A stretch of 64,000 bases of DNA from Oikopleura dioica. Lineage: Eukaryota; Animalia; Chordata. The translations under genes were made by a program, and so were the position numbers. The stretch covers positions 5,828,001-5,892,000 of the forward strand of contig OU015567.1 of NCBI GenBank assembly GCA_907165135.1, given 5' to 3'. The notes beneath the pieces are model-generated. The model had not been told where the DNA came from. It was given only the letters and a program-made list of their open reading frames with translations, and ran no database searches. Of the stretch, positions 3,025 through 9,582 are shown piece after piece; position 1 is the first letter of the stretch; every line of letters starts with the position of its first letter.

Positions 3025-4343
3025 TTATGCACAGAAACATTCAGCGACAGGGAATATTATCGGCCGGAAAAAAATGCCCGAGTGATTGTTGATGACTTTT
3101 GCCGAGGATATTTTTTCGCTATCCCATTCCAGTTTTTCGACGGCGTTACTAAGTTTAATAATTTTTGTTGATTCTTAAAGATAACATACGGTTCTTTGCT
3201 GCCGCTTACAAGATAAATCGTATTTCCGATTCGCGCTGCGGAAGAGAACCGATGCTTAAGTTAAATTTATATGGCTGAATTTAATAAAAGTCTTACAAAT
3301 TCGTTGAGCTGGCCAACCACGGTCCATTTTGAGTCGCGAAATAAATAAACATCTTTTGAATCTTCTCGGTCATCAGAGTAATAACCTCCAAGGAGAAGAA
3401 ATCCGTCGTAAACTCCAATGCAGGAGTGAAAGGAAATTGCTCTACAAATCATTATTTTAAGATATTTAAATCAAATTACTTTGGAAAATCTGGTAATTCT
3501 ATCCAAGAACCTCCGTCGAATTTCTCCACTTTCTTGTAACCGTCAGAAAGGGAGGAGCCGATTCCAACTGGTTGGTCGAAGTAGAGCGCCAAGCATGAAC
3601 TTCTGTGCGAGTATTTCGTCGCCGGTTTTATTGACACCGCGCTGCCGTCGAATTCTTCGCAGTTTTTGTATTCATCATAGGAAAAACAAATTAATGCTAA
3701 AAATTTTAATATTTTTTGAACATTTCGACTTGTCCTTTACCTGATTGTTGATCCGCCGCCGTGACTGTAGCAGAGCTATAGTAATACCAATTGTTGAGCT
3801 TCACATCTAATTCCTCGATTTCGCAGCCGTTTATCATCGAAATCTATTTTTCCAGGGAGTAAAAATATTTATAAGCTGACACTTACTCTGAATTCATAAT
3901 CTTGGTATCCGCTAAAAATGTAGACTTTTCCGCGAATCAAAGCAGAAATCGAATGGTAAAGATAGTGATATGTGTGACTTGAAGGAGGCATTTTGATTGT
4001 CCGAGAACTCTTGCTTCCGTCTGGTTTGACAACGTAGCTCAGAATCTCTGTTTGAGATTCATAACCAGAAAGAACCATCAATGAGCGACTGTTTTTGAGT
4101 TCTTCGATCTCTTTTTGAAGCCGGAGAACATCTATGTTAAATTTTTAAATGTTGTTAAACAAAATTTGCACTGGCAGTGTTCAGATCATAAGCTTTACCT
4201 GAAGCTTCCGCATCGGTAGAATTGTCCTGCGAGTCTGAACGAGTACCCATTTTCGAAAGAATCAAAGGCGTAACGATTCCGTGGATGGTCAGAAGAGCCA
4301 CTGCAATCTTCAAAATCAGCGAAAGACCTTTTAGTTTATTCAT
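3025..4343 (-). CDS. Kelch/galactose-oxidase-like beta-propeller protein, copy A (multi-exon)
   Basis: Exons encode SISALIRGKVYIFSGY, FHSCIGVYDGFLLLGGY, RDSKWTVVGQLNEF and HSGIFFRPIIFPVAECFCA*, joined by short GT-AG introns. Collinear inverted paralog at 5971-9582. Confidence 0.7.
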
Positions 4344-5970: not shown

Positions 5971-8900
5971 ATGATCGTTTTTCTTGTATTTTTTGCGAAA
6001 TTGATTTCAGCAGTAAATGAACGGGTTGATCTTGAGGAGCATTCAAATGGCCTAGAAAGCAGGGCGGTCTAATTTGCATTCTTGTAAATAGTCTTTTTTC
6101 CGAAGACTATTCATTTATTCTTATAACATTAATCTCGACGCGAGATTAGTCTGTTTGAATAAAAAAGATTAATTCGGGAAATTTTCGAAATAGTTCCGAG
6201 ATTATTTCAAATAATCTTGAAACGCGCGCTGTGATTGGTGGACCAATGGCCGACGGCGCGAGAGAAAAATGAAACTCAAACATGCTTGGAGCGCAGCTTG
6301 AAATTTTGTCCGCGCCGCCTCGCACTGCTCACAGCTCGCCAGCGCCACCCAAATTTTTCCCCCGAGCCACGCGACCCTCGCTAAAAAGATTAATCTCGAA
6401 ACTAGTCCAGTCTTGACTAATCTCAGAATTTTTTTCCAAAGAAGATTAATCTCGCAAATTTTCGAGATTATTTACAAGAATGCAAATTAGACCGCCCTGC
6501 TAGAAAGCGAAAACGAGCATTTGAAAGCTGAAATTGAAGCTCTTTATCTAAAATCCGAGAATCTCTCTGAAAATCTGGCGAGCTTGAAAATTGAGAATGA
6601 AAGACTTTCGAACGAGGAAAAACGGTAATTTCCATCATTTAAATTTCATTTTCAAAATGGATTCAGACTCAAAACGAGAAATTACAACTTATGGAAGAAG
6701 CTTCAGGGTCAAGCTCAAAAAGGTTTATTTTGGGAAGATTTTTTCTCGAGTTTGAATGAATTTAGATGAGGAAGTAATAAGATTGAAAAGAGAGAATGCC
6801 AACTTGATCGCTGCGAACATGGAGCTTAAAAGATCGAGAACGGATCAAAAACAGGCTGCTTTGAAGGAAATCAACGAAGATTTAGAAAAAGCGAAAAGGG
6901 AGAAGGGCGAGATTCAGGAAAAATTGGATATCGAGAAGATTAGGTGAGCAGTCGGTCTCTTTTTGACTTGATTTATCTTTTAAGAAATGCTGATCTTCAA
7001 AGCGAAATCGAGCAATGCAAAAGCGAAGAGGAACATTTGAAAGATGAAATCAAGGAGGAGAAGGCGCGGTGTTCTAGGGCTACTCAGGTTTGATTGAAAA
7101 TTGAAGCTTGGTTTTTATAAGATTCGCTAGGATTTGAAAAATGATCTCGAGCGAGAAGACCTCGAAAATCAAGAGAAGAACTCGTTGATGGTGCTTTCTT
7201 ACCAATCAAAAACAGAGTTTCTGAGCTACGTTCTCAAGCCAGACGGAAGCGAGAGTTCCCGCACAATCAAGATGCCTTCTTCAAGTCATGAATATCACTA
7301 CCTTTACTGGTCGATTTCTGCTTTGGTTCGCGGAAAAGTCTACGTTATTGGTGGATACGGAGAATATAAATTTAGAGTAAGTGTCAGCTTATACAGTTGA
7401 CTCGCACAATTTGGACCCGCACAATTCGGCCCTTTTTCCGAATTTTGCGAAAATTAATGAAACTCGCTCAACAAGCCATCTTTGTGAATTTCTGTTAAAT
7501 TTGCTTGCTCAAACGTAAAAAATGCTATTTCTTACCTTTTTTTCTGATAAACACGTAGAATTTACGGGGATAATTGACGAAAAAAGTGATATTTTAACAT
7601 TTTAGGGCTCTAAAATTGATCTTTTTTAAAGTAACAGCAAATTAATTCGAATTTCGGACCCGCACAATTCGGCCCTTTTTCGAGAAATCTGCCTGACAAA
7701 ATGGTCAAAATTTTGTGCGAGAAATTGTGCGAGTAAACTATAAATATTTTTATTCCTTGAAAAAATAGATTGCGATGATCAACGACTGCGAAATCGAAGA
7801 ATTAGATGCGAAACTCGGCAATTCGTATTCCTTGAGCTCTGCTGCTGTAACGGCGGCGGATCAACAATCAGGTAAAGGAAACGTCAAAATGTTAAAAAAA
7901 TGAAGTCCCTTTTTTTCCTATTTTTAGCATTGATTTGTTTTCCTTATGAAAAATACAAAAAATGCGAAGAATTCGACGGCAGCGTTGTTTCAACAAAACC
8001 GGCGACGAAATACTCGCACGAAGATTCATGCTTGGCGCTCTACCACGACCACGCAGTCGCAGTCGGCTCCTACCGTTCTGACGGCCGCAAAAAAGTGGAG
8101 AAATTCGACGGCGATTCTTGGACAGAATTACCAGATTTTCCAAAGTAATTTGATTTATATCTTTTCGGGTTGACTTCGTTAATAGATCATATGATTTTGT
8201 ATCGAACGTTTTCGTTTATTGGATAAACTTCATCAGGATACTAAACTTAAGATGAACGAAAAAGAAACAGAGGAAAAAGAATACTTTTATGTTGAGAGAG
8301 CAGTGTGAAATTGCTAACTGACGAAAACAGAAAAACAAGATCAAAAAATGGCTGTTTTTAGTCGAGCGCCAAGGTGGCCCAAAAGTAACACCTTCTTTTT
8401 GCCTAGTCGTTAGTTGGAAAACCATACGACTCGAAAGAGCCTTAGGCAAATTTCTCAAAAGAGTCCCTGAAAAATACGATTTGTGTGATCTCATTTATTC
8501 CTGGAAATGTGACTGTAAAGCGCAATACATTGGTCAGTCCAAACGAAGAGCTGGTATTCGTTGGACTGAACATGTTAATTCTAACAACCAGAATAAAAAT
8601 GCGTCTTCTTCCATCTTCAAACATTTTTCCACTTGCAAGACCTTTCAAAAAAGCTATGAAACTTACATTAGTGAGCCAAGCACAAAAAATCTCACCAGTC
8701 AATACAAGACTAAAATCGCCCAATCGAAACTTGCTCTAGAGTCCTTTCACTCTAAAAATCCTCCGAAAATTCGATACAAATTTTCAAAAAATGACTATGC
8801 TTTAAAATACTTTGATGTTCTGCAAACTAATCTAACTAATGAGAGTCAAAGGAGAAGCGCTGAACAATTTCTTATTTTACTGCATCGACCTTCCCTAAAT

Positions 8901-9582
8901 GAACAATCTGATTTCAAACAGTTCAAAACTTTTTAATTTAGTCGAGCACTGTTTTGGGCCACCTTGGCGCTCGACTAAAAACAGCCATTTTTTGATCTTG
9001 TTTTTCTGTTTTCGTCAGTTAGCAATTTCACACTGCTCTCTCAACATAAAAGTATTCTTTTTCCTCTGTTTCTTTTTCGTTCATCTTAAGTTTAGTATCC
9101 TGATGAAGTTTATCCAATAAACGAAAACGTTCGATACAAAATCATATGATCTAATTTGATTTAAATATTTTTAATTATGATTTGTAGAAAAATTTACTTT
9201 CATTCCTGCATTGGAGTTTACGACGGATTTCTTGTCCTCGAATACTCAAAAGATGTTTATTTACTACGCGACTCCAAATGGACCGTGGTTGGCCAGCTCA
9301 ATGAATTTGTAAAACTTTTATTAAAGTCAGTCATCGTAAAATTTAACTTTAGCATTCGTTCTCTTCCGCAGCGCGAATCGGAAATACGATTTATCTTGTT
9401 AGCGGCAACTCAAAACCGTATGTTGTTTTAAAGAATCAACCCAAATTATTGAACTAAGTTATGCCGTGGAAAAACTGGAATGGGATGGAGAACAAATTGC
9501 CTCGGCAGAAGTCATCAACAATCACTCGAGCACATTTATTCGTCCGATCATATTCCCTGTTGATGAATTTTACTGTACCTAA
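5971..9582 (+). CDS. Coiled-coil plus kelch-like beta-propeller protein, copy B, interrupted by three mobile-element insertions
   Basis: Signal-like MIVFLVFFAKLISA, then heptad-rich exons, then exons matching copy A (SISALVRGKVYVIGGY; KKVEKFDGDSWTELPDFP; HSSTFIRPIIFPVDEFYCT*, TAA 9580-9582). Confidence 0.7.
6060..6499. mobile_element. hAT-like MITE (440 bp) inserted in a coding exon
   Basis: Perfect 31-bp TIRs (CAGGGCGGTCTAATTTGCATTCTTGTAAATA) and an 8-bp TSD CTAGAAAG (6052-6059, 6500-6507). An 8-bp TSD with CAGGG ends is typical of hAT. Confidence 0.9.
7394..7740. mobile_element. Tc1/mariner-like MITE (347 bp) in an intron
   Basis: TIRs CAGTTGACTCGCACAATTT / AAATTGTGCGAGTAAACTA and TA duplication. 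The paralogous intron in copy A (gtaagtgtcagcttaTAaatattttt) is the empty site. Confidence 0.85.
8199..8241 (-). ncRNA. Identical hammerhead ribozyme in the inverted pLTR
   Basis: Exact reverse complement of 9095-9137. Confidence 0.85.
8385..8936 (+). pseudogene. C-terminal GIY-YIG endonuclease fragment of a Penelope-like element
   Basis: The frame is open from the junction at 8385: DLIYSWKCDCKAQYIGQSKR...RWTEH...SSIFKH...RRSAEQFLI...PSLNEQ. No start codon and no reverse transcriptase domain. Confidence 0.85.
9095..9137 (+). ncRNA. Minimal type I hammerhead ribozyme in the 3' pLTR
   Basis: GUAUC-CUGAUGA-A-GUUUAU-CCA-AUAAAC-GAAA-ACGU-UC-GAUAC: complete core, 6-bp stem II, palindromic AACGUU stem III and 5-bp stem I. 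Confidence 0.85.

Follow-up and report, generated by a model that had tools for sequence, protein, structure and literature searches.

Why should an intron of a chordate gene hold a complete hammerhead ribozyme together with its exact reverse complement? The question is raised by a 64,000-nt stretch of the Oikopleura dioica genome (assembly GCA_907165135.1, contig OU015567.1, positions 5,828,001 to 5,892,000 of the forward strand), referred to here as the window and numbered from its first letter. An earlier note on this DNA had described a pair of minimal hammerhead ribozymes locked in a 202-bp hairpin inside a host intron and had related them to the pseudo-long terminal repeats (pseudo-LTRs) of Penelope-like elements (PLEs). 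It had proposed that the sense copy could cut the intron or be silenced by its antisense twin. The analysis reported here indicates that positions 8156-9153 are, with high probability, a single recent insertion of a canonical PLE, dead on arrival in a host intron of 37 nt. The hammerhead would be masked and uncleaved, and the whole insert would be removed together with the intron.

The Hammerhead Motif

A full minimal type I hammerhead and its exact reverse complement can be read directly from the sequence.

8199-8241, minus strand: minimal hammerhead motif, antisense in the host transcript; scored 64.3 bits by our own covariance model (R1)
9095-9137, plus strand: minimal type I hammerhead, sense in the element and in the host pre-mRNA; predicted cut between C9132 and G9133

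In the plus-strand copy, helix I is formed by GUAUC (9095-9099) with GAUAC (9133-9137) and helix II by GUUUAU/AUAAAC around the loop CCA, and the palindrome AACGUU (9126-9131) provides the helix III segment. The catalytic core comprises CUGAUGA at 9100-9106 and GAA at 9123-9125, with A15.1 at 9126, U16.1 at 9131 and C17 at 9132. Every core nucleotide expected of a hammerhead is present (C3-U4-G5-A6-N7-G8-A9, G12-A13-A14, the A15.1-U16.1 pair and an H17 other than G). One unpaired A (9107) precedes position 10.1, and the G10.1-C11.1 pair is G9108-C9122.

Could such a motif be fortuitous? A motif-specific pattern matched the two arms only, with zero matches expected by chance. A general hammerhead descriptor found these two sites and no others in the 64-kb window; the same descriptor gave a mean of 0.01 matches per window on 200 dinucleotide shuffles, and none when the stem lengths were restricted to those observed. 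A chance origin of the motif is excluded. Direct reading and the descriptor search both bear out the complete core and the antisense twin of the earlier note. Its "pair" of ribozymes holds for the two copies of the motif but not for the RNA: any one transcript carries one ribozyme, and the other copy is its antisense.

Anatomy of the Insertion

The two motifs are embedded in an inverted repeat (8183-8384 and 8952-9153) of 202 nt, whose arms are 100% complementary, as had been described, and are separated by 567 nt. The previously proposed span of 8199-9137 does contain both motifs, but the insertion is larger (8156-9153) and includes a 27-nt tail. It consists of this tail, an inverted 202-nt pseudo-LTR and a 5'-truncated copy, which comprises the last 184 codons of a putative reverse transcriptase (RT)-endonuclease open reading frame (ORF) and a pseudo-LTR, all between the two copies of a target-site duplication. 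Element coordinates below refer to a reference copy of 2073 nt (L033:764-2836).

8148-8155: left copy of the target-site duplication, ATTTGATT, found as a single copy in the empty intron of a paralog
8156-8182, minus strand: 27-nt PLE tail, adjoining the inverted arm on its outer side
8183-8384, minus strand: inverted pseudo-LTR (short arm), element positions 1872-2073
8381-8384: inner junction of the two putatively cDNA-derived copies, with the 4-nt microhomology AAAA
8385-8939, plus strand: open 3' end of the PLE ORF, 184 codons, linker and putative GIY-YIG-type endonuclease, stop codon at 8937-8939
8940-8982, plus strand: local 11-bp hairpin directly after the stop codon, -19.2 kcal/mol; the inverted arm ends in its loop
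8952-9153, plus strand: direct pseudo-LTR, which forms the 3' end of the long, 5'-truncated copy (8381/8385-9153; element positions about 1297-2073)
9154-9161: right copy of the target-site duplication, ATTTGATT, identified by comparison of the flanks

The duplication is 8 bp long and can be stretched to 12 nt via ambiguous bases common to the element ends. Homology among all copies of the element stops at window position 9153, which is element position 2073. The 27-nt tail follows this position on exactly one side of every paired insertion compared, and these 27 nt also link position 2073 to the next unit in L031, a partial tandem. Because the arms are identical and the target-site duplication is intact, the insertion looks very young, with gene conversion between the arms as a possible alternative.

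Identity of the Element

What kind of element is this? The 567-nt spacer is an open frame that runs into the stop codon at 8937-8939, is colinear with positions 1297-2073 of longer element copies and carries a GIY-YIG-type signature (LIYSWKCDC..YIGQS..R..R..EH). The copy in the window is truncated and without an RT domain. One longer colinear copy has an uninterrupted frame of 583 codons with a match to RVT_1 (E 2e-6). Three homologs (P0005, P0007 and P0013) have RVT_1 matches above the Pfam cut-off. The ORF in the window aligns to the C-termini of P0005 (E 7e-18) and P0013 (E 3e-6), and in P0013 the segment aligned to the window motif covers its weak Pfam GIY-YIG (PF01541) match. A word-index protein search returned unnamed metagenomic relatives and two wasp proteins and nothing else; several of these proteins have RVT_1.

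These comparisons of sequence support the assignment of 8156-9153 to a canonical endonuclease-bearing (EN+) PLE. The earlier attribution of the motifs to the minimal type I hammerheads of PLE pseudo-LTRs is upheld by the putative GIY-YIG-type part of the ORF in the spacer and by covariation in related PLEs, which is described below. PLE insertions are known to have pseudo-LTRs in direct or inverted orientation, typically with inverted 5'-truncated copies and with a tail of 30-40 bp at one end (PMC8557442). The family in the window resembles canonical EN+ PLEs (Craig et al., 2021, PMC8557442; PMC11167929) in its probable RT with a putative C-terminal GIY-YIG-type endonuclease, its pseudo-LTRs, its frequent 5' truncation, the inverted 5'-truncated copy on the 5' side, the tail at one end, the AT-rich targets and the short target-site duplications. 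It differs from them in its short unit (about 2.1-2.75 kb), in its 27-nt tail and in an inverted arm that is nearly fixed at the length of the pseudo-LTR.

Copies Elsewhere in the Genome and the Route of Integration

The 202-nt right arm has 45 matches in the genome, many of them as plus/minus pairs. The head-to-head layout recurs at about 15 loci of this family, with a long arm that starts anywhere from position 1 to position 1776. The target-site duplications at other loci of the family are 10-11 bp long, and more than 10 separate loci have a duplication of their own. Other PLE families in the same genome (23-40% protein identity), several of them with open frames of 840-850 codons, are ordered as inverted arm, pseudo-LTR, ORF and second pseudo-LTR. 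Their arms are 190-250 nt long, the inverted arm being about as long as the direct pseudo-LTR, and their unit measures about 2.75 kb. PLE reverse-transcriptase matches number at least 70 across the genome and belong to several families. The head-to-head layout at this locus is not special; it is a standard by-product of PLE integration (PMC8557442, PMC4209133).

How might such a structure arise? From published PLE biochemistry, the GIY-YIG endonuclease would be expected to make staggered cuts in an AT-rich target, giving a duplication of 8-12 bp. Both DNA ends would then prime reverse transcription of PLE RNA; purified PLE protein has been shown to cleave and extend both target strands (PMC11167929). 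One complementary DNA (cDNA) may have stopped past the pseudo-LTR (202 nt, preceded by the tail of 27 nt) and the other inside the endonuclease coding region (about 776 nt). Joining of the two cDNAs head to head at the 4-nt microhomology would leave two inverted pseudo-LTRs, each with a hammerhead. In the life cycle of the element, the hammerhead is thought to process transcripts of more than unit length by pairing with a second sense copy via AACGUU.

Perfect terminal inverted repeats inside a short flanking direct duplication could also point to a foldback or miniature inverted-repeat transposable element (MITE) type of DNA transposon with 202-bp terminal inverted repeats, or to an artefact of nanopore assembly. 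Both are extremely improbable. Each arm corresponds to the 3' end of a retroelement, and the ORF of this element continues into one of the two. Elsewhere in the genome, arm pairs flank copies truncated at the 5' side to varied lengths, and the tail is one-sided. The DNA transposon was rejected on this retroelement ORF unit, asymmetric tail and variable inner truncation point. An assembly artefact was likewise rejected, the many separate loci with their own target-site duplications speaking against it.

The Host Intron and its Empty Counterparts

The site of insertion can be reconstructed from the host gene and its paralogs.

3442-3479, minus strand: intron of the nearest paralog (38 nt), still empty and within this same window, showing the target before insertion
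7900-8144, plus strand: upstream host open frame, which includes an exon with its 3' end at 8144; over 100 genomic matches
8145-9187, plus strand: host intron with GT at 8145-8146 and AG at 9186-9187, phase 2; 1043 nt now and 37 nt before insertion
9188-9311, plus strand: stretch from the start of the downstream host exon at 9188, joined in frame

The upstream frame ends in ..FDGDSWTELPDFP-K ahead of the GT, and the downstream frame resumes in phase past the AG. The element begins 11 nt into the former 37-nt intron of this plus-strand gene and lies in sense orientation. The nearest paralog is 4.5 kb away on the opposite strand (exon stretch 3482-3664, minus strand), and its intron matches the flanks in the window minus the insertion and one copy of the target-site duplication. 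The in-frame GT..AG join and the empty intron of this paralog support the earlier proposals that the hairpin lies inside a host intron and that the plus copy of the hammerhead is sense in the pre-mRNA. Five paralogs have an intron of 37-90 nt at the identical codon, and the insertion is absent from all five compared.

The host gene belongs to a large family. With the upstream exon as query, more than 100 matches were found in the genome, including a tandem cluster at C4 13.89-13.99 Mb. Pfam searches with the host exons one at a time gave only sub-threshold Kelch matches, which came from a neighbouring exon. An empty allele of this particular intron was sought with a 34-mer, which had no exact match in metagenome contigs and no match with up to two mismatches in the own genome.

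Conservation of the Hammerhead

Is the hammerhead maintained by the elements that carry it? The motif is found in the same place in relatives with 71, 67, 36 and 29% protein identity, in a sister family and in three further families of the same genome. Among these relatives and other families, helix I varies as GUUCC/GGAAC, GUUUUUC/GAAAAAC and GUCA/UGAC, helix II as GAUAU, GGAGGG, GGAU, GGAG and GAAGGG, and the helix III palindrome as AUAU, AGCU, ACCGGU, AGAUCU and ACGU. In an older subfamily (93-94% identical), the sole difference within the motif is an allowed change of H17 from C to U; in a subfamily 85-88% identical to the element, loop II is altered as well.

When 11 hammerheads were aligned with MAFFT, four were misplaced in their 3' halves, and this alignment was replaced by one to a covariance model, which had been built from seven hammerheads of these relatives and families. 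The covariance-model alignment comprises 10 distinct sequences; 97.6% of its cells are paired, against 28-40% in slid controls, and 5 of 9 pairs have changes on both sides. Being fitted to the model, this alignment leans towards the structure; individual motifs were also parsed separately. Searched against the whole genome, the model identified at least 71 sites, often as close plus/minus pairs. In these sequence comparisons, the hammerhead is kept across PLE families with compensatory changes. The earlier note had named a core that was not conserved in other genomic copies as a result that would speak against its proposal; the core was found to be kept across copies and PLE families.

Observations that Count against the Assignment

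Some observations weigh against a canonical PLE with a PLE-type hammerhead. The search with the Rfam hammerhead families that the earlier note had suggested (Hammerhead_1, _3, _II, HH9 and HH10) gave no match at the gathering score on the window. At E<=10 on positions 8100-9250, Rfam again gave no hammerhead and merely chance matches to long non-coding RNAs and internal ribosome entry sites. The Rfam models expect a helix III hairpin, which is absent from this motif by design. On the protein side, the RVT_1 match of the longer copy (28.1 bits) falls just below the Pfam cut-off of 29.6 bits. Pfam GIY-YIG has no match in the spacer ORF of the window or in the frame of the longer copy, so the endonuclease is assigned from its motifs and by homology to relatives.

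The length of the short arm is a further difficulty. Of 17 inverted arms, 11 start at element positions 1869-1874 and the others at 1881-1898, and such a near-constant length is unexplained by simple random 5' truncation. In those same 11 arms the inner end falls in the loop of the 11-bp hairpin that follows the stop codon of the ORF. The fixed length would be accounted for if an RNA 5' end lay there or if the template were switched at this place. Conceivably, the second strand is primed on the upstream pseudo-LTR of an RNA longer than one unit and runs off at the RNA 5' end. The arm could even be a programmed product of PLE integration, forming a hairpin that masks the ribozyme and the poly(A) signal and that perhaps lets 1-kb PLE insertions persist in the introns of this compact genome, which are 40-50 nt long, or feeds small-RNA silencing of the family. 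This last proposal is unlikely.

Folding and the Expected Fate of the Transcript

Does the hammerhead cleave the host pre-mRNA? In a double hammerhead, two sense copies pair with each other to make helices I and III. The host transcript has one sense copy, and the antisense arm is transcribed first, with the hammerhead at the far end of the second arm. The competing structures were compared by their predicted folding energies.

Intron RNA with both arms fully paired: minimum free energy -459.8 kcal/mol
Arm duplex: -354 kcal/mol
Duplex of hammerhead and antisense twin (43 nt): -69.9 kcal/mol
Double hammerhead formed by two sense copies: -14.7 kcal/mol
Two separate hammerhead monomers: -14.4 kcal/mol

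The fold of the monomer is indistinguishable from that of shuffled sequences (z -1.14). With a single sense copy and no helix III, cutting of the intron, the first of the two earlier proposals, is unlikely. The second, silencing by the duplex, is strongly favoured by the energies: -69.9 against -14.7 kcal/mol makes masking by the antisense arm likely. The order of transcription, with the antisense arm first and the hammerhead at the far end, is predicted to leave no kinetic window for folding of the ribozyme. The hammerhead is most likely masked in a duplex of about 200 bp and idle at this locus. No cleavage is expected here, and the insert would be removed with the intron, provided that the 1043-nt intron still splices.

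It is very unlikely, conversely, that the host pre-mRNA is cut by the sense hammerhead, acting by itself or in trans with other PLE transcripts, with a loss of host gene output. All core nucleotides are intact in the sense orientation, and a partner in trans is conceivable: about 40 covariance-model matches elsewhere belong to the own or the sister family, most of them with AACGUU. The local antisense arm would nevertheless outcompete any dimer by more than 50 kcal/mol, and a cut within the intron need not affect the mRNA. Published minimal PLE hammerheads, which lie in pseudo-LTRs, did not cleave as monomers and cleaved weakly as dimers (PMC4209133, PMC6765202). For one PLE, insertion in vitro did not require the hammerhead, and RNA-seq showed no cleaved ends (PMC11167929). 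An exapted regulatory ribozyme was also considered and rejected.

Could the hairpin rather than the ribozyme be the functional part? It might be a device of the host or of genome defence, either as a Dicer/ADAR substrate whose small RNAs or edited RNA silence the PLE family or by looping out the 1-kb insert for splicing. The duplex is long (202 bp) and perfect, the genome has genes with A_deamin and Dicer_dimer domains, and the head-to-head form is common to many PLE insertions of this genome. Processing of the double-stranded RNA by the host is, judging from these genes, possible. A function of this kind is nonetheless improbable, as the architecture of the hairpin follows from the integration mechanism alone. 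The insertion looks very young and is missing from the paralogs compared; there has been no time for selection on the hairpin, and there is no sign of selection. We infer that the insertion has no host function and that it is an ordinary PLE copy whose hammerhead stays silent.

Relation to Known Hammerheads

The hammerheads of metazoan PLEs have been reported to occur in pairs on opposite strands 100-700 bp apart, with a short helix I, a long helix II, an unpaired base before position 10.1, a G10.1-C11.1 pair and a palindrome at 15.2-16.2 (PMC4209133). The motif in the window shares the type I topology with these (Cervera and de la Pena, 2014, PMC4209133; Lunse et al., 2017, cited in PMC6765202), with a helix I of 5 bp, a helix II of 6 bp, the G10.1-C11.1 pair, one unpaired nucleotide between A9 and 10.1 and the dimer-suited palindrome AACGUU. 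The location in pseudo-LTRs and the opposite-strand pairs a few hundred bp apart are also common to both. What sets it apart from those described is the specific Oikopleura family and an AAUAAA within helix II/loop II. A sense core inside a host intron is likewise found in the intronic amniote hammerheads (Rfam Hammerhead_HH9/HH10) and Hammerhead_1. These are stable monomers kept at orthologous sites, whereas the core in the window belongs to a young transposon copy, has no Rfam match and is paired with its antisense.

Among the papers in the library searched, none was found that mentions hammerheads in Oikopleura PLEs. In the published assembly of Okinawan O. dioica, PLEs were described as 'almost absent' and 44% of repeats were unclassified (PMC8008620). 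The abundance of minimal hammerheads in the same genome, where by the published annotation there are hardly any PLEs, is useful for the annotation of larvacean repeats. The locus alone matters little, since the earlier note was a correct observation of an ordinary, well-described arrangement. It is, however, a cleanly resolved PLE insertion, with a target-site duplication, a tail, an inverted pseudo-LTR, a microhomology junction and an empty paralogous site. It could serve as a natural test case for the masking of a PLE hammerhead by its antisense twin in vivo.

Additional Observations

The AAUAAA hexamer at 9116-9121 lies 32 nt ahead of the 3' end of the element. It may be the poly(A) signal of the element or reflect mere AT-richness. 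An AAUAAA within helix II is also present in four relatives (L047, L048, L049 and L055), and in two other families it is found just past the cleavage site.

Contig C3 (2.9 Mb) holds about a third of the PLE RT matches. Another PLE copy (L031) also adjoins a gene, which has a GG-rich repeat resembling that of the host gene.

An internally deleted derivative of the pseudo-LTR was also found. It is about 94 nt long, joins positions 1936-1971 to 2016-2073, and retains both hammerhead and 27-nt tail. At least three loci carry it, among them G000:C1:5091447-5091540 (L045), G000:C2:8510435-8510638 (L044) and G000:C2:8901097-8901201. Both loci whose flanks were examined have a target-site duplication of their own, and one is an inverted pair. 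The derivative looks like a mobilised non-autonomous mini-PLE, and it is reminiscent of the PLE origin that has been proposed for animal retrozymes (bioRxiv 10.64898/2026.07.22.740005).

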